NCBI GenBank assembly: GCA_900088475.1
Contig: FLMG01004374.1
Coordinates: 1-64,000, forward strand
Direction: 5' to 3'
DNA from: Hyphochytrium catenoides
Taxonomy: Eukaryota; Protista; Hyphochytriomycota
DNA: 64,000 bases
Each line of letters starts with the position of its first letter. Position 1 is the stretch's first letter. The notes beneath the pieces were generated by a model that was given only the letters and a program-made list of their open reading frames with translations, ran no database searches and was not told where the DNA came from. The translations under genes were made by a program, and so were the position numbers. Positions 614 through 32,796 of this stretch are shown in pieces.

Positions 614-2901
614 ATGACAAGGAAAAGGAGTTATGAGGACTTGGAAGAGAGCACAGAAGGAGCTGAGCTAGGTGCGGAAGCCAGGATACTCTGGCTTCAC
701 TCTTCAAATATCCCATTTGATGGTACTGCACCTAACAGAAGGCTTGTAGAAGCCAGTAGCATAGAGAAAGAGCTTGGTGAGGCCGTATCAGGCGAGCTAG
801 CCAAGCAAGGAGCAGTAAGAGAACCAAGAACAGACCAATGTACCACCTTCTTACTGCTCAGCGGCACGACCTGCCCATAGATGGCAAGCAAGAAGATGCA
901 CTCCCTAGCTTCCAGAGCTTTCTAGGTGGACACAGCTCAGGCTACGCCTTCCTCGATGCCTGCTTCTGCATAGTCATCCCCCTTATTGCTAATGCACTTG
1001 TTCAGTTGATGAACAAACCCCATTGGTTCGCGCTCCTCTCCGTTCTGCTTCCTAGCGAGGCAGAGGAAGAGCGAGGCTTCTATGTGAGGCATGTCGTCAA
1101 CGAAACGTCTCTTGATGAAAGGGGAAAATTCATCGAGAACAATAGCCGCAGGAATGACATTCTGCAGGTAGCGCTAGGGCTTTACATCTCCAAGTTTATG
1201 TCAGCGCAACCAAAGAAGTTCTCGAAGTACTCTGTAGCACAGAAGGAAGCACGAGACTTCCTTCGCGGATGCATTGAGCTCAGTCTCTTTCATCCTGACG
1301 ATGAGAAGGTTCTGTACAATAATAGGGGGAAGGTAACCTACCAAGGAGGCGCCAAAAACATCTACGAACAGCTTCTTTCATACAGAATCACCGCCATCCC
1401 CCCGCTAGGGCTCTGGGTAGATTTGGGAAACGGCATCTCAATTAGAAGGATGGAGGGCGCCCCAGGTGGAGAGACAGCCCAGGAAGACCACAATGAAGAA
1501 GAGAAAAATGGCAACAAGGCTGGGCTTCTGGTCACAAAGACAACCTACTCCATCCGTTGTCGTCTCTGTGAGGGAGAGAAGGCCGTCAATGGCTTTATAA
1601 GCACCGCGTTGGACGAGTACAAGCGGGACATAGGCAAGAGAATAGACAACAACCGGTACTACTATGTGCTGGAGAACTCGAAGTCCTCGTCTACTACCTC
1701 GGCTCAAAATTACTCGGGAAGTCAAAATGGTGGAGCAAAAAACAACGCTACATTCCTGCGCTACGCATTATCTGATCGAAAGACCTTCGACACGCTGTGG
1801 TTCTCAGAGAAGAAGAGTGTGATGAAGCTCATTGACAACTTCATGGAAGGAAAGGGCAAGTTTTCTAAGCCTGGATTCCCTCATAAGCTAGGCTTTCTGC
1901 TATATGGTCCACCTGGCACAGGGAAGACTAGCCTGATTAAGGCGATTGCTCATTACACTGGACGCCACATCATCTCTGTCTCCTTGTCAAAAATCAAAAC
2001 CAACCAAGAGTTGATGTCTAGAATGTTTGACCTGCAGCTGCGGGTCCCAGGCCAGTCTTTCACCACCAACTATGGCTTTGAAGATGTCATCTTTGTGCTT
2101 GAGGATATTGATTGCGCCACCAAGATTGTTCTGCGTCGGGACGAACTGAAGGATGAGAATGAATTGAAGACGAAGGAGACTGACTTAGAGTCAACAAAGG
2201 GTGATCAGAAGGAAAAAGTGGAGGTTGACCGCAAACTCACGGGCCGAGAGGATGGCGACCCCGAGAAAACTGGTCTTAGCGCTGTCGATGTCATGGCAGC
2301 TGCATTTCAAAAGGCACTGTTAACCAGTATGAACGCTGATAAACTTCTAATGACACCATACAAGCTCAGAGAGACACGTCATGGGGCCCTCAACCTCTCA
2401 GGTCTGCTGAACGTCATAGATGGCGTTATCGACACTCCAGGACGTATTCTTATAATGACAACCAACCATCCTGAGAAGCTGGACCCAGCCTTAGTAAGGC
2501 CTGGCAGGGTCAACAAGCGGCTTCTGTTAGGATATATGGATGCAGTCTCCGCCATTGAGATGATTGAGCATTTCATGATGGGGGAGCTGACAGATCGGGA
2601 ACGAGACCAAGTGAAGAGCGTATTGGCTAGCAACAACGTTACACCAGCTCAGGTAGAGCAGATCTGCATTGAGGCCGATGATGGCGCGGGTGCAGTGCGG
2701 ATTCTCCAACAGCGCTTCCAAGAAACTTCAGCGGCTTCTTACTCTGAAATCTTGAATGATAAGAATGCAAAGGATGGAGAGATGGGTAAGGGGGATTCGT
2801 GCAATGACATTGCAGAAAGAATGAAGGTGACAGAAGAAGTACTGGAGGTCACCGCGCTGGTCCGTCAGGAGTCAATAGGAAAAGTCCGTCCTGCCGCTTA
2901 G
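614..2901 (+). CDS. BCS1-like AAA+ ATPase
   Basis: ORF 838-2901 has Walker A ([18 protein letters not shown]), Walker B (IFVLEDID), LNLSGLLNVIDG and sensor/SRH (MTTNHPEKLDPALVRPGRV), all typical of BCS1-type ATPases. Upstream ORF 614-880 can be joined in frame by a GT-AG intron (777-880 or 815-861), so the start is 614 or 838. Confidence 0.85.
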
Positions 2902-7205: not shown

Positions 7206-7643
7206 AGATGGTGGTGACTGTGCGACTGTACAAGCAGTTTGCAACAGAGGAAAGAGGAGGAGGGAAAAAGTGGTGCGAATGTGTCTTTCCTCTGTTTCTC
7301 CTGGGGAAACTCTGGAGCGCTTGGTTGGTATGATTCCCCCTCGGTGAACCTTTCAAGTGCCTTGAAACCTTGACCTTCAGGAGGGAATGTTAGTCATCCA
7401 TAGTTTGCAGAGATTAATTGCCCATTGTTCCCTTGAAAGATTCCGGTGTCCCTCCTCCCCACACTACTTTTGGCAATTGGTTCATAATTCTGGGTAACTC
7501 ACCGTATTTTACTGGCAGTGAAAAGTCATGTTCGGAAGTTTGACAGAGCGAATTTAGTACTATCCTGTCAATTTCGGGAGGAGATTTTGCCTTGTAATAA
7601 TAGGAAGTTGGGGATGGCCTTTGGTGAAGAGGTGCGGTTTATA

Positions 7644-7644
<1 letters not shown>

Positions 7645-7693
<49 letters not shown>

Positions 7694-7872
7694 CCTCTCT
7701 CTTTCTCTCTTTATTTTCTCTTTCTTTCTCTTTTCTCTCTCTTTCGCTGTCTCTCTCTCTCTCTTTCTCTTTCTCTCTCCTTCGCATATACTCTCTCTGT
7801 TTCTCTTTTTCACTGTCTCTCTCGCTCTCTCGCTCTTCTTTCCATCATTCCTTCTGTCTTTCTCTCTCTTCT
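7645..7872. repeat. (CT)n-rich tract
   Basis: Long, imperfect CT run upstream of the ATAD3-like gene. Confidence 0.9.
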
Positions 7873-8208
7873 CCACCCGAAGATGTCTCTTCCTCTCTCT
7901 GCTAGTTCAACTTCGACTTCCTCACTGTTCATTCCAGCCGGTCAACCAACCACCCAGCCTCGCCCTGAGGGACACTGCCCGATGCTTCACCGTCATCAGT
8001 CTCTTTTCCTTATAAAGAAGGGTGCCCTACTTTCTTGTTAGAGACAGTCAACCGCTGCAGCACCTCGAAAGGTCATTAGTGGTCTCTCCTGAAGGCAGCA
8101 GGAAAGAGCTGGTGCAGAGCTTCATTGTCAAGTTGCTTCGCCTTCTTCACCTTGGGGCTCTTTCACTCTTGATCAAGCTCGGGAGACCCGATAGGCGAAC
8201 AGCGAGAG

Positions 8209-11200
8209 ATGAAAATCTGCAGGTCGCACGGGTCTCTCTTGATCACTCTGGCGTTGTGCCTGAGAGGCCAGCTGGCGGCCGGGGTGAATGGATCTCATGC
8301 TGCATCTAAGCCGGATGGAAGGCTCCTGTCCTACACTGAAGCCTTTGACAACATCCGTCCACATAACGTCTCCCATAGCTATGAGGTTATCAGTGTCCTT
8401 CCTCTCAAGAGCTTTGAGTTCAAGTATGACAGCATGTCAGGCCGCTCCCAGCTAGGTTTTATCGGGCCAGGTATGTGTCTCGATTATTGTCAGTCTTTCT
8501 CTCCTTTGCCTACCCCGTAGCGTTTCCATAGCATTACCTCTAGCTGATCGTTGAGTTCCACTTCGTAGCTCTCTCTTTCCTTGTGTCTCTCTCTCTTGCT
8601 TCTCGCTCTCTCTGTGTGTGTCTCTCTCGCTATTCCTACCTCTCACCTGGCTGCCGTTTCCGTTTTTCCCCGCTTACTCCTTCTTTTCGGCTTCGCTTGT
8701 CTCCTCCTGCCTTTTCCTTGGAAGTATTGCATATATCTTCAGCGTGGATTTCCTCCCAACTTCTTGCTCCAACGGCACTCGAACTCAGAGCTTTCCTTCT
8801 CATTGGATTATTGACTTCCTGTGGCTGCAACAGAGCTACGATCGGTTCTTCCACACATAATCACCGTGGTGCCAAAGAAACGTATCCCGGACCCTCGGAA
8901 CGGCCAGGCTGTGACGTTAGAGGACTATTACATTATAGACAAGAACGCCATGTTCATGCACAATGTAGCAGCTACTCAGGTGAGCTGGACAGCCTGCTTG
9001 TGGCTGGGCGTCCTTACCTTCTCCTCGATCGAACGCGTTCGGCTCGCATCTCCTACAACTCAGACTTAGAAGTTCAGAGTCTTCTTTCACGTCATACAGC
9101 TCGTTGCCCTCTATAAGCCATACTTTCTCTATTTGCATCCGTCTTGGTGTGTCCTCTCTTATTCTCAGCTGCTCTCTTTCTTTGGCTTTCTCAGTACCCT
9201 TCTTCAGCTACTCATTGTGGTCAGTAAAGGTGATCTAATGCTTTTTTCATGCTGACAGCACGCTATTGGGCGTCTCCAGAAGCTGCAGGATCGACAAATG
9301 AGCCATGGCAATACTCTTGACGTTCAGGATCAGCTCATTAAGAACCTCACTAGGTACCTTGAGCAGGTACGAGCGTCAGTCGATGGAGTAGGATAGTTTT
9401 CGTTCCTAATTTAAGCTAACAGACACCTGTAGGAGGCGTCAGTGCAGTTGGTTGAGAGGAGGAAGATAGCAGAGGCAGAGGCAGAAAAAGCTGCTTTGCA
9501 AATCAAACTGGCGGAGACGACCGAGGCCGAAGCCAGGAAGACTTTGGAGGAAAAGAAAAAGTCAGAGAAGGTATTCTTCTCGCTCCTGCCGCATCTCCAT
9601 ATCTACTCACGGACGTAAGCGCTCACTGCACTTCGATTGCTTCCATAGGAGCTGGAGGATTACAAGCTAAAGCTAGCATTGGAGCAATCTGAGAAAGAGA
9701 GGGAGGAACGGATGAAGCAAGAGATAGAGCTGGTAAGGCACTAAGACGTGAACCAGACTTAACAGCGAGAGCTTATCGTGCCATTTGTTAAAACTTAGAT
9801 TGCACTGAGAGAGCAGTCTGGCGAAAGGCTAGAGGCAAAGCGCCGGGAGACGGAGGAAGCTCTGCAGGTGTGGATGGAATATCCTCATGAATCTCTTCCC
9901 TCTGGCTGGCTACTGCCACTCTGTTCAAAGTCAGACTAATGATGCCTTCTATCGCTTGCACTATTAGAAAGAGCGGATTAAGGCGGATAAAGAAAGGGAG
10001 GAAAAGGAGAGGGAGTTGGCGCTGAAGCGCGCAGAGTTAGAGGCTGAAGCTAGAATCCGTCAGCAGAGGGAGAACGAGGATGTCGATCTGCGGATGATGC
10101 TGGCCAAGTAAGTACGGAACTTAAAAAGCATGTTGATTCCCGTAATCTGAACATGTGGCAGAGGAAGAGAGCGAGAGAAAAAGAGACTCTATTTCTTGAC
10201 AGATCAATGGGCTCCAGCCAGCTAGGGAAGAAGCTAATCTTTCTTGTTAGGGCTGAGCAGGAGCGCGTGAAGATGGTGGAAGCAATCAGGGAGATCTTTC
10301 AGCAGCTTGCCACGGGTGCCATCATACTTCTTACAGACAAACGCAAGCTAGCTGTTACTTTAGGTGAGTATAATAAGGGAACAGAGACCTGCTTCGCGGT
10401 GCACGCCCGTCAGATACACTTTCTCCGATATTCCGTTGAGTCCCCTAGTTCGGTACAGCTACCTGTGCACTCACTTGTCCAATTCTAGATGCCGACTAAA
10501 GCAGGTGCCCGTACTTCAGTAATACTGATATCCTTATTCTTCCTCCTGCAGCGTCTATCATTGCTTTAGTGGCTGGGATCTACGCATCAAGAGAGACTAT
10601 CCGCATCATAGGCCAAGTCATTGAGAAAAGACTGTCTCGTCCCTCTCTTGTACGCGAGACTTCACGCGCGACTTCACTGTCACAGCTTCTCTCCAGCTGG
10701 ATCTTCTGCTGTTGCGGGAGAAAGGGCAACTTTGATCGATTCGCGGACGTGATTCTTCCAACCGAGCTGGAGAAGAGGGTGCGGGGTCTATCCCGTTCGA
10801 TTGCAAACTCTGTGAGTGATTGGACTTCGTATCAACTCTCTCTCGCTGTGGGGCCTCTCTCTCTCTCCNNNNNNNNNNNNNNNNNNNNNNNNNTCTTTCT
10901 CTCTCTCGCTCTCTCTGTGGGTCCTCTCTCTCGCTCTCTATGGGTTCTCTCTCTCTCTCCTTGACTCTCACTCTTTCCTCCTCTCCCTCTCTTTTTAATT
11001 TCTTGACCTGTGAAATGGCTCAACGTCCCGTTCAAGGCCAAATTACATAGAGCTCCCTCTTGGCAAATGCCATGTACCCTGATGCTGCTTCCACCTACTT
11101 TGTAAAAGGATTAGTTAAGGAGGTTGCTTTGTGCCCCAGATGCTAAATTTTTGCTCTGCTTTGCCTGCAGAGGAGGAACGGTGCTCCTCTGAGGCACATC

Positions 11201-12631
11201 CTGCTCTACGGGCCACCCGGCACAGGGAAAACGATGGTGGCAAAGCGAATGGCCCAGTGTTCCGGTCTGGATTACGCTGTGATGAGCGGTGGCGACGTGG
11301 TATGGCACCACTTCACTAAGTGGGCGAGAGTAGTAGGAACACAGAGGAGGTTTGAGACTGAGGAGATAGAAGAGGCCAAAATTCTACAGCGACCGTTATC
11401 ATCAGGATATGGGACTATGAGAAATGAACGAGCTATCGTGGCTCTGCAACATTAAGGGAGACGGCTAGATCTTTCCACGATACTGATTGAACTATTATGC
11501 GTCCTCAGGGTCCTTTGGGCAAGCACGCGGTCACAGAATTGCATGCACTTTTTAACTGGGCCAACACGAGCTCCAGGGGCCTTCTTCTCTTCATCGATGA
11601 GGCCGAAGCGTTTTTGGCAAAAAGGAATACCGATATGAGCGAGCCTCTTAGGAATGTGCTGAATGCTCTGCTCTATCAGACAGGAGAGCAGTCCACCAAG
11701 TTCATGATGGTAAGCGCGGTAGAAACGTCTTAATGAAGTAGGTATGCGACAGGGAGGGCACTGTATAACGCACCAGGACCCACGAGGCCTCATCATTTTG
11801 TTCTCTGAGAGGGCGGAGGAGGGACTGAACTACTCTTTCACGCTCCTGCTAGGTGCTGGCGACTAACAGGCCCGGGGATCTGGACTCAGCAGTTAATGAC
11901 CGTGTGGATGAGTCTCTGTTATTTGACCTGCCAGGTGTGAAGACAATCAGTGCCAAGCTTCTTCCATCTCTGATTCTTTCCTTCAATCTCACGCAGTCCT
12001 CGCTCTCCGTTACTCCCCGTCCTCACTCTCTTTCGACTGCATTCTGTAACGTGTGATGGTCTACTATCGTATCTCATGTTGTCGCCTTAAACAGAGAAGC
12101 ACGAGCGTCGAGCACTGATGAAGCTTTATTTCAAGAAGTTTGTCCATGACGCACACCTCATGGGAAAGAAGAGCTGGTTGACCTCTCTGGGCCTTCAGAG
12201 AGGACCTTCAAGAATCTGCACCGCTGGGATCAGTGACAAAGTGCTGCAGGAGGTGAAGTCCATTACCGTCTTGTGTCCCTCAAAATCTAGTTCTCTCGGT
12301 AAAGGGCCACGCGTTATCATCTTCCAGCTTGCTTCTACCTAAACAAGGGCGCCTTTCCAGCTTGACTGCGCCTTCCCGCTCTTTTCCTTATCGGGCAGTC
12401 CAAATGAAGGCTGACCTTCGCCATTCTGATTGTTCTCATCCACAGGCTGCTGACAAGATTGAGAACTTTTCTGGTCGAGAGATATCTAAGCTGATGCTCA
12501 GCATGCAAGGCGCCGTCTATGCGCAAGAGGCCCCCATCTGCACCTTAAAGCTCTTCAAAAAGGTCCTAGAGCAAAAGCTCACTGAGCACGATAGGAAGGA
12601 AAAATACGACAAGACAGCCACGGCCTTTTAG
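8209..12631 (+). CDS. ATAD3-like AAA ATPase with N-terminal signal-peptide-like leader and ICA/peptidase-S74-like domain (~691 aa, 14 exons)
   Basis: Phase-compatible GT-AG exons: 8209-8470, 8834-8979, 9259-9366, 9433-9570, 9649-9732, 9799-9867, 9968-10107, 10251-10363, 10552-10811, 11171-11299, 11509-11709, 11853-11934, 12095-12252, 12446-12631. ATAD3 hallmarks present: [17 protein letters not shown] segment [101 protein letters not shown]. Confidence 0.9.
10838..10995. repeat. Intronic CT-rich repeat with assembly gap
   Basis: CT runs with a repeated ctctctcgct..ctgtggg unit flank Ns inside ATAD3-like intron 9. Confidence 0.85.
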
Positions 12632-31114: not shown

Positions 31115-32796
31115 CCTGTTCGTGTGCCCGGTTCAAAGTGTTTCTGAGCACAGCAGAAAAGTGAAAGGACCACGAGCGTCACCAAATAGTGTGAACAATC
31201 TTCTTATGAGATGGCTGGTGCCAGCAGACGATGAAGCTGAGTTCTCACTCCTCCAAAAAGACCGTGTAAGATCCACACACACACCCAGCAGTGTGATCGG
31301 TCTGCAATGAAAGCATGAACAAGAAGTAGGATTTACTGCCAGAGGGAGCTAAAAGCGTACGGGTAACTTGCACTGTTCATAGAACTAGCAGTCCCGCCTT
31401 CCATTCTTCACAGCAGAAAGAGCTGCAGGACGCTGTCTACCCCAAAGATCCCTTCCCGAAGGAAAGAATGAAGGTCCATACCGCTCTTCTGTCGCATCCT
31501 ATCCCACTTTACTTTTGGCGGGAGATGGCACAAAGACGACCATAGTGACATCTAGTCCGAGGGGAGGTCACTAACAGCCCCCTTCCTTACTATTGCCTGA
31601 AAAAGATATGCGCTACATGTGAATTGATCCACGTCCCGGCACTTACGTATATAAACCCTCTCTTGTCTCTAACAAACTACCGGGTGATGTGGCGGTCATC
31701 TGTTACAGCTGCGACTGGCTGGGTACGGGAGCGGGCGACCTGCTCCGCCGCTGGTACGGCCCCACACTGTCTCTCTATGTCGAAGGTGCCGCCCATCTCA
31801 AACCTCGCGTGAACATCGGGGATCTGGAGTAATCCAGGCCTTCGAGGTTCATAATGAAAGGGGGAACGCCGCAGGCTGGCAACAGAGCACGGAAAACCCT
31901 TCGCGTGAGGTAGTGAGAGGAACACGGCCCTGAATGGGGAGGTGGGGAGATTGGCCAGGCGGGCGGGGTGGAACGCCGTTCGCGAATACACTTTTTGTTT
32001 TCTTCTTCAATGTAAGGCAAAACAATCAGGCCAATGCTTCTTATAGTACAGTAGGAACTAGGAACCCAGCTTCATCAGTCTGCGGATAATGTGTTATTAT
32101 TGAAAGACTGTCTTTCCTTCATTTTGGCTCTACTCATGTTGGCGCAAACGGCATCTTGCTCTGCTGATTGAGATAGCCCTGTACTTACAATGAGCCGGCC
32201 TTTCTACATTCCCTGCTTTTTGAATTCTAAAGTACTACTGGCGATCCTGTGTTTGCTGGAATTGGAAGAGAATAGATCGTTGCCACTCTGCTGATATTAT
32301 AGTCTCAACCCCTCACCATCCTCCCACGGGCAGGGTTACTCTCCCCCAACACCACCTCTCGCCTCATCTTGAGGCAGACTTGTTTAGCAGTAGCACTTCC
32401 TCCGCCGCCACCTTTGGTGGTCCCACATGCTAAATGAGGGACTGCCAGGCAAAGGAAGAGAAGGATGGACGGAAAGGATAGAAGCATAAAGCACGACTCA
32501 ACACTCGTAATTGCGTTGTCAAAGTTCAAGTCAAAAGCTATCTTTATTGGAAGCGGTGCCATGAATGCTAAGGATCAAACCTGCAGGGCTTTCATCTATA
32601 AAGGCCTGCTGTTTCCCTTTTATTATGGGGCATACTAAACAGACGACCATAGTCAACAGGAGGAGTTCGTCGCGCGGGGGGAGGTGATACTATAGTGAGG
32701 ACAGAAGAGAAGACGGGAGGACGCATGTTGTGCCTGCTCTCCCTGAAAGCCATCATCAAATTGAAAACGAGCTTCCATAGTCTTTTATCTTAAAGC

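Follow-up and report, generated by a model that had tools for sequence, protein, structure and literature searches.

A putatively non-cleaving intramolecular chaperone domain at the N-terminus of stramenopile ATAD3

ATAD3 is an essential protein of animals, plants, and Plasmodium and counts among the human disease genes, and its working mode is still unclear. Least understood is the N-terminal half of the protein, which projects from the inner membrane. In human and Plasmodium, ATAD3 is a mitochondrial inner-membrane protein with its ATPase in the matrix, and a two-membrane model exists for the human protein (PMC13249166). Intramolecular chaperone (ICA) domains are known from a different context, the self-cleaving protein MYRF, where trimerization is driven mainly by a triple coiled coil of the C-terminal ICA helix, and where the self-cleavage dyad S587/K592 corresponds to S911/K916 of endosialidase (PMC8326128). 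Here we analyzed a stretch of 64,000 nucleotides from Hyphochytrium catenoides (assembly GCA_900088475.1, contig FLMG01004374.1, positions 1 to 64,000 of the forward strand; hereafter the window), in which a gene at positions 8209–12631 (+) is predicted to encode an ATAD3 that begins with an ICA domain. With moderate confidence, we regard this locus as an intact, constrained gene for a stramenopile ATAD3 with a non-cleaving ICA trimerization cap, most likely mitochondrial.

In the spliced window DNA, 14 exons with GT-AG at each junction form a single open frame that starts with the ATG at 8209 and stops with the TAG at 12629–12631. The exons, all on the + strand, total 2076 of 4423 bases (47% of the span) and encode 690 amino acids (aa); the exon 12/13 junction that scores better makes this 691 aa. 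The predicted domain order is a hydrophobic signal-like N-terminus, the ICA domain (aa 41–147), a helical ATAD3_N stalk of ~200 aa, one transmembrane helix, and an AAA ATPase that is complete. Alignment to homologs resolved small in-frame ambiguities at four junctions. For the exon 12/13 junction, a full-length family profile yielded 759.4 bits when 11934 was joined to 12095 (GT...AG) and 752.6 bits for 11936/12100; this profile, which scores the window protein at 759 bits, was built without the window sequence. Structure predictions and database searches were made with the closest relatives, and the window model was compared locally with profiles derived from these relatives. An earlier note on this DNA had assembled a spliced peptide from exons 1–3, which our model reproduces exactly, and had described it as continuing in phase through the stalk and the transmembrane segment to a complete ATAD3 ATPase. 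This description is borne out by the 14-exon GT-AG frame and by whole-protein colinearity with homologs, which share 47.8% (P0003), 43.5% (P0018 of Aphanomyces astaci), and 36.7% (the chrysophyte-type P0010) identity with the window protein.

The ICA domain is split over three small exons. Exon 1 (8209–8470) encodes aa 1–87 plus one base and contains the start codon, the signal-like hydrophobic N-terminus (aa 1–25, 8209–8283), and the first half of the ICA from aa 41 (8329) onward, followed by the donor GTATGT. Exon 2 (8834–8979; aa 88–136) encodes the middle of the domain, and exon 3 (9259–9366; aa 137–172) its C-terminal helix, which continues into the stalk helix beyond the domain end at ~aa 147 (9291). 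Model residues 41–147 scored 128 bits against the relatives-only profile, and both the exon 1/2 and the exon 2/3 junction are confirmed because this profile aligns through them with zero indels.

Profiles linked this domain to ICA domains of known structure. A profile of the relatives' N-terminal domains matched the crystal structure of the MYRF ICA (7dc3) with E = 2e-13 and the T5 tail fiber with E = 1e-3, and a deeper profile of 56 sequences, none of them from the window, matched 7dc3 across the whole domain with E = 3.8e-18 and the ICA of the phage T5 L-shaped tail fiber with E = 6e-6. Some relatives, such as P0009, exceed the Pfam cut-offs for ICA domains by themselves. The AlphaFold (AF2) model of the ICA domain of the closest relative had a predicted local distance difference test (pLDDT) score of 95.4. 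Its 12 best PDB matches were all ICA domains (among them MYRF 7dc3, endosialidase 3gw6, T5 4uw8, and GA-1 3gud), its 11 best Swiss-Prot models were all MYRF or MYRF-like (TM-score about 0.72), and among the AlphaFold database (AFDB) clusters it retrieved oomycete orthologs first, followed by MYRF and “Peptidase S74 domain-containing” proteins. By profile and predicted fold, the N-terminal domain at aa 41–147 is thus confirmed as an ICA, and the register alignment with the MYRF ICA given in the earlier note proved right.

Searches with single exons or single domains were less informative. Exon 1 had no S74 match in Pfam and no match in PDB (phmmer), and exons 1–3 retrieved nothing useful from PHROGs. 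A protein-language-model search with exon 1 returned Peptidase_S74 clusters for 99 of 100 matches, with a score of 0.83 that we take as a lead only. An exhaustive HMMER search with the same exon gave 12 matches, comprising eight true relatives and four proteins (turtle tenascin-X, PKD, cadherin, and WD40 proteins) that we dismissed as spurious repeat proteins. In a word-based search, the N-terminal domain of P0003 alone retrieved no more than three near-identical proteins, and for this reason profile and whole-protein searches were required.

Related ICA domains also occur in other settings. Two proteins from ENA contigs outside the window, P0009 and P0023, contain the same ICA subtype above the Pfam cut-offs for S74 and MYRF_ICA; in both, the domain is C-terminal and preceded by an acidic low-complexity N-terminus, and neither a signal-like segment nor an ATAD3 part is present. 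Either this ICA subtype has a second architecture or these proteins are fragments of transcripts. The AFDB matches A0A1V9ZHT7, D0MTD8, and A0A397DAF5 (229–578 aa) are named “Peptidase S74 domain-containing”. We take these to be oomycete proteins, judged from their accession numbers only; if this is so, ICA folds may serve more than once in the lineage.

The self-cleavage machinery appears to be missing throughout the family. At the position of the catalytic Lys, the 130 non-redundant family members have Tyr (91), Leu (20), Phe (13), or Ile (6), and Lys in none, and the position of the catalytic Ser is not conserved. In relatives, Pfam S74 matches begin at profile position 8–11, past the dyad. 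Moreover, the ICA begins 15–50 residues after the initiator Met with only a hydrophobic segment ahead of it, so that there is no passenger to fold or release. As judged from these sequences, the domain is a pseudo-peptidase, which has the fold and the profile of the family and lacks both its catalytic residues and its usual position. Because the Ser-Lys dyad is absent across the family, we interpret the ICA as a non-cleaving trimerization cap and not as a peptidase, and the label “peptidase S74” used in the earlier note is to be corrected in this respect. An active S74 peptidase that cuts itself as in MYRF and the endosialidases, and thereby frees a short N-terminal peptide or acts in trans, would agree with the fold and profile and with Ser41, which the window protein happens to carry where the catalytic Ser aligns. 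However, Phe46 occupies the Lys position of the window protein, and in MYRF the exchange S587A or K592A abolishes cleavage (PMC8326128). Together with the family-wide pattern, this makes an active enzyme highly improbable.

The remainder of the protein has the features of ATAD3. The stalk is encoded by exon 4 (9433–9570; aa 173–218; helical ATAD3_N stalk), exon 5 (9649–9732; aa 219–246), exon 6 (9799–9867; aa 247–269), exon 7 (9968–10107; aa 270–316), which matches positions 149–191 of Pfam ATAD3_N (PF12037) with E = 6e-4, and exon 8 (10251–10363; aa 316–354), which contains the stalk end and the start of the transmembrane helix. Exon 9 (10552–10811; aa 354–440) completes this helix and adds the conserved RPSLVRETS motif and a linker; it matches the end of ATAD3_N with 28 bits (gathering cut-off 25), and relatives reach 79–136 bits. 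Hydropathy analysis detected two hydrophobic segments only, at aa 8–26 and at aa 348–366, the latter being the transmembrane helix (10345–10363 and 10552–10589), and the helical ATAD3_N region lies directly ahead of it, as in the ATAD3 family. In the full-length AF2 monomer model of the closest relative, helices at residues 132–257 and 265–351 precede a transmembrane helix (354–389) and the AAA domain, and the last ICA helix runs unbroken into the first of them, which is 126 residues long.

The ATPase begins in exon 10 (11171–11299; aa 441–483; Pfam AAA 34 bits) with Walker A GPPGTGKT at 11210–11233 and continues in exon 11 (11509–11709; aa 484–550), which encodes the AAA core with Walker B LLLFIDE at 11581–11601; both exons match Pfam AAA. 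Exon 12 (11853–11934, the preferred end; alternative 11936) contains the stretch [17 protein letters not shown] with sensor 1 and the arginine finger at 11859–11909, exon 13 (12095–12252, the preferred start, based on the family-profile score; alternative 12100) the AAA lid, and exon 14 (12446–12631) the C-terminal helices and the stop codon. Both Walker motifs (A and B), the sensor-1 motif, and the arginine finger are intact, and the protein contains [15 protein letters not shown] and ATNRP...DRVD. With plant ATAD3 it shares 42–44% identity over about 70% of the length. Besides the ICA, Pfam gave only ATAD3_N and AAA, and no NDT80-type DNA-binding domain, a trait of MYRF, was detected upstream of the ICA.

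An assembly gap at 10869–10893, which has CT-rich and poly-C low-complexity flanks, lies inside intron 9 (10812–11170). At the protein junction across this gap, aa 440/441 (...SRSIANS/[21 protein letters not shown]), the alignment with four full-length relatives shows no indel, and for this reason no coding sequence appears to be lost. Contigs of three public DNA runs covered all exons; they end at 10832 or 10868 (one with a poly-C tail) and resume at 10894, and none of them bridges 10869–10893. CT-rich low-complexity tracts were observed at 7560–7900, 8560–8640, and 10840–10980 (the upstream region and introns 1 and 9). At such tracts the contig depth peaks ~3- to 18-fold (bins 8562–8715 and 10872–11025), and false contig joints connect 8604 and 8628 with 10894 and 10944. 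The tracts are dispersed simple repeats and probably the cause of the assembly gap.

The DNA runs differ from the window in many places, and this variation bears on the reading frame. All 12 listed indels between the window and the runs fall in predicted introns, and 8 of the 37 listed substitutions inside the gene are exonic. These eight, which are spread across exons 1, 2, 7, 10, 12, 13, and 14, are all synonymous third-position changes. Of the positions that are invariant or near-invariant in a family alignment of 64 sequences, the window protein retains 38 of 41 and 56 of 61, respectively. Hence, we conclude that this is an intact gene under purifying selection and that exons 1 and 2 are part of it. 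Three observations on the window gene would leave room for a gene-model artefact, in which exons 1–2 (or 1–3) form a separate small gene or the gap conceals a break between two genes: no RNA run is listed, the gap is unbridged by public DNA contigs, and the window's own protein is absent from the database matches, of which the best shows 47–48% identity. However, 172 full-length relatives, including complete transcriptome open reading frames (ORFs), are colinear with the window protein and join ICA, ATAD3_N, and AAA in one protein; zero indels occur at any junction, the gap-crossing one included; every junction is GT-AG; and the eight listed exonic substitutions are all silent. We therefore give the artefact almost no credence, and the question raised in the earlier note, whether exons 1–2 might belong to a different gene, is answered in favor of a single gene.

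The fusion is not unique to the window genome. In relatives of at least 550 aa gathered by two profile and whole-protein searches, the ICA N-domain was present in 172 of 194 proteins, and those without it were plant ATAD3, unrelated repeat proteins, or split gene models. All named carriers of ICA-ATAD3 are stramenopiles. They include the oomycetes Phytophthora, Pythium, Globisporangium, Plasmopara, Albugo, Aphanomyces, Saprolegnia, and Achlya, as well as Ectocarpus, Scytosiphon, Ascophyllum, Chrysoparadoxa, Thalassiosira, Triparma, Spumella, and Ochromonadaceae. Several carriers are complete transcriptome ORFs, and in these relatives the ICA and the ATPase are thus on one mRNA. Among the top 120 matches listed, the next-best after the ICA-bearing relatives were plant ATAD3. 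Consistent with the statement of the earlier note that canonical ATAD3 has no such domain, the plant matches lack the N-domain, and the plant and Plasmodium proteins are without an ICA. One relative, P0058 of Thraustotheca clavata (1050 aa), has ~420 aa with a 2OG-Fe(II) oxygenase domain (PF13640) ahead of the ICA-ATAD3 part; here, two adjacent genes were probably fused by the annotator.

A maximum-likelihood tree rooted on plants recovered clades of oomycetes, diatoms with Triparma, brown algae, and chrysophytes, and placed the window protein as sister to all oomycetes (SH-like approximate likelihood ratio test [SH-aLRT] support 98). Because stramenopile clades are recovered with the window protein beside the oomycetes, the tree indicates that the gene follows the species tree, that inheritance was vertical, and that the fusion arose before the oomycete lineage and the photosynthetic stramenopiles parted. 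Databases for the most part do not show the architecture, since the ICA is split over three small exons and remains sub-threshold in Pfam for most members. One ortholog has been auto-named “Peptidase S74 domain-containing protein” and roughly a dozen carry precomputed PF13884 or PF13887 matches; most are annotated with ATAD3_N and AAA only. The suggestion of the earlier note that similar architectures may exist unannotated in other protists was correct as to their existence, which extends throughout the stramenopiles; annotation partly exists already. In the literature library that was searched, we found no paper that combines ATAD3 with an intramolecular chaperone, S74, or stramenopiles, none that describes the fusion, and no mention of PITG_19005. 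A 2026 study of Plasmodium, which describes itself as the first work on the ATAD3 of a unicellular organism, makes no mention of such a domain (PMC13249166). To judge from this search, this is an undescribed, lineage-wide ATAD3 variant.

By analogy with MYRF and from its fold, the ICA may act as a permanent, non-cleaving trimerization nucleus. Across the membrane from the ATPase, it would wind the ATAD3 stalk into rods of three strands, and an AAA hexamer would then bear two trimeric stalks. A trimer on one side of the membrane and an AAA ring on the other, as proposed in the earlier note, are plausible on this basis. By orthology with the animal, plant, and Plasmodium proteins, the protein would most likely cross the mitochondrial inner membrane with its transmembrane helix, face the matrix with its ATPase, and extend its ICA-capped stalk into the intermembrane space, where the N-terminal hydrophobic segment would hold the stalk tip at the outer membrane.

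Several points weigh against this interpretation. Considered alone, the exon pieces of the window stay below the Pfam thresholds for S74 and MYRF_ICA (the last 16 aa of exon 2 match MYRF_ICA with E = 0.018), and the ICA assignment draws on the family profile and on the structural model of a relative. The listed sequencing runs include no RNA run, and the splicing of the window gene is deduced from DNA. Homotrimerization is argued from the fold and from MYRF, and likewise we infer the placement of threefold stalks on a sixfold ring. A canonical ATAD3 may yet exist beside this form in this genome or in other stramenopiles; split gene models aside, no stramenopile protein of at least 550 aa without an ICA was found among the top 120 matches listed, a result obtained without a whole-genome search. 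Finally, nearly all members begin in a signal-peptide-like manner, with a short charged n-region, a hydrophobic core of 8–15 residues, and a small-residue motif, which argues for entry into the endoplasmic reticulum (ER) and against mitochondrial import.

The last point would be explained if a cleaved ER signal peptide made this a type I membrane protein that resides in the secretory pathway, be it in the ER, the nuclear envelope, or the plasma membrane, with the ICA stalk lumenal or extracellular and the AAA domain cytosolic, so that ATAD3 had moved out of mitochondria. In examples among the brown algal and chrysophyte-type N-termini, the small-residue motif is followed by acidic residues; basic residues follow the transmembrane helix on the ATPase side; and the fungi are a precedent for the loss of ATAD3 from mitochondria (PMC13249166). 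Basic residues, however, stand on both sides of the hydrophobic core in the window protein and the oomycetes. This pattern also suits a mitochondrial outer-membrane anchor. About 112 of 130 sequences contain an N-x-S/T motif, and oomycetes have extra NVT motifs just upstream, which would fit a lumenal location. We considered the conserved motif as a sign of N-glycosylation and dropped it, since cytosolic MYRF has D-T-T at the same place; a feature shared with a cytosolic protein is not evidence for glycosylation, and the conserved N/D-x-S/T is probably a structural helix cap. The ATAD3_N and AAA parts, with their similarity to plant ATAD3, look orthologous to mitochondrial ATAD3, and the lack of a canonical stramenopile copy among the matches listed likewise speaks against a relocated protein. 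Taken together, a secretory location is possible though less likely, and we put the chance of a mitochondrial location at somewhat better than even. Slightly less likely still is a complete secretory machine with a threefold-on-sixfold symmetry mismatch, in which a non-catalytic ICA cap and a trimeric stalk of roughly 30 nm stand in the secretory lumen of the ER or nuclear envelope or at the cell surface and are driven by a cytosolic AAA ring. If true, a protein regarded as strictly mitochondrial would have been relocated, and an ICA would for the first time serve as a permanent N-terminal assembly cap.

The stramenopiles, an entire supergroup of eukaryotes with oomycete pathogens of plants and animals, diatoms, and kelps, offer a natural experiment on the oligomeric state and the reach of the ATAD3 stalk, as its tip is here a structurally defined trimerization module. 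ICA-ATAD3 also raises the testable question of where the protein is located. Furthermore, it widens the known eukaryotic uses of ICA domains, from the self-cleaving release switch of MYRF to a probably retained, non-catalytic assembly cap.

Three further features were observed in the window. Just upstream of the ATAD3 gene, an intronless ORF of 687 aa at 838–2901 (+) is hydrophobic near its N-terminus and carries an AAA domain in its central part (Pfam AAA, 69 bits); it resembles BCS1-like AAA proteins and has no more than the AAA fold in common with the ATAD3 gene. A full-length signal recognition particle RNA lies at 31679–31980 (+; Rfam Metazoa_SRP, 145 bits, E = 2.6e-37). At 54426–55691 (+), a single-exon ORF of 421 aa contains lipoyl and 2-oxoacid dehydrogenase acyltransferase domains (E2 subunit), and its nearest atlas clusters are eukaryotic.

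Compared with described systems, the window protein shares with ATAD3 (human ATAD3A, the plant proteins, and PfATAD3, PF3D7_0707400) the helical ATAD3_N region, a single transmembrane helix followed by a PSLVRETS-type motif, and an AAA domain at the C-terminus that has the two Walker motifs, A and B, plus the arginine finger. In contrast to animal ATAD3A, which starts with a proline-rich motif, and to the ICA-less plant and Plasmodium proteins, it starts with a signal-like segment and the ICA. The MYRF ICA (7dc3; PF13884 and PF13887, MEROPS S74) is both its best profile match and its best structural match (TM-score 0.64–0.73), across the whole domain including the triple-coiled-coil helix. However, MYRF uses its dyad to cut itself and free an upstream NDT80-type DNA-binding domain, and its ICA follows a beta-helix in the middle of the chain, faces the cytosol at the ER, and has a transmembrane segment and a lumenal C-terminal domain downstream, whereas the window protein has no dyad, no upstream passenger, no NDT80 domain, and an N-terminal ICA. 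The ICA domains of phage tailspikes and tail fibers (endosialidase K1F, 3gw6; the T5 L-shaped fiber, 4uw8 and 8hqz; GA-1, 3gud) share the fold and a detectable profile similarity, and differ in being C-terminal chaperones that fold a trimeric fiber and are then cut off, whereas the window ICA is N-terminal, predicted to be retained, and followed by an alpha-helical stalk. As an analogy only, the SUN-domain proteins of the LINC complex likewise place a globular trimer at the tip of a long trimeric coiled coil, across a lumen from a single transmembrane helix; they have no sequence or fold kinship with ICA-ATAD3 and no ATPase.

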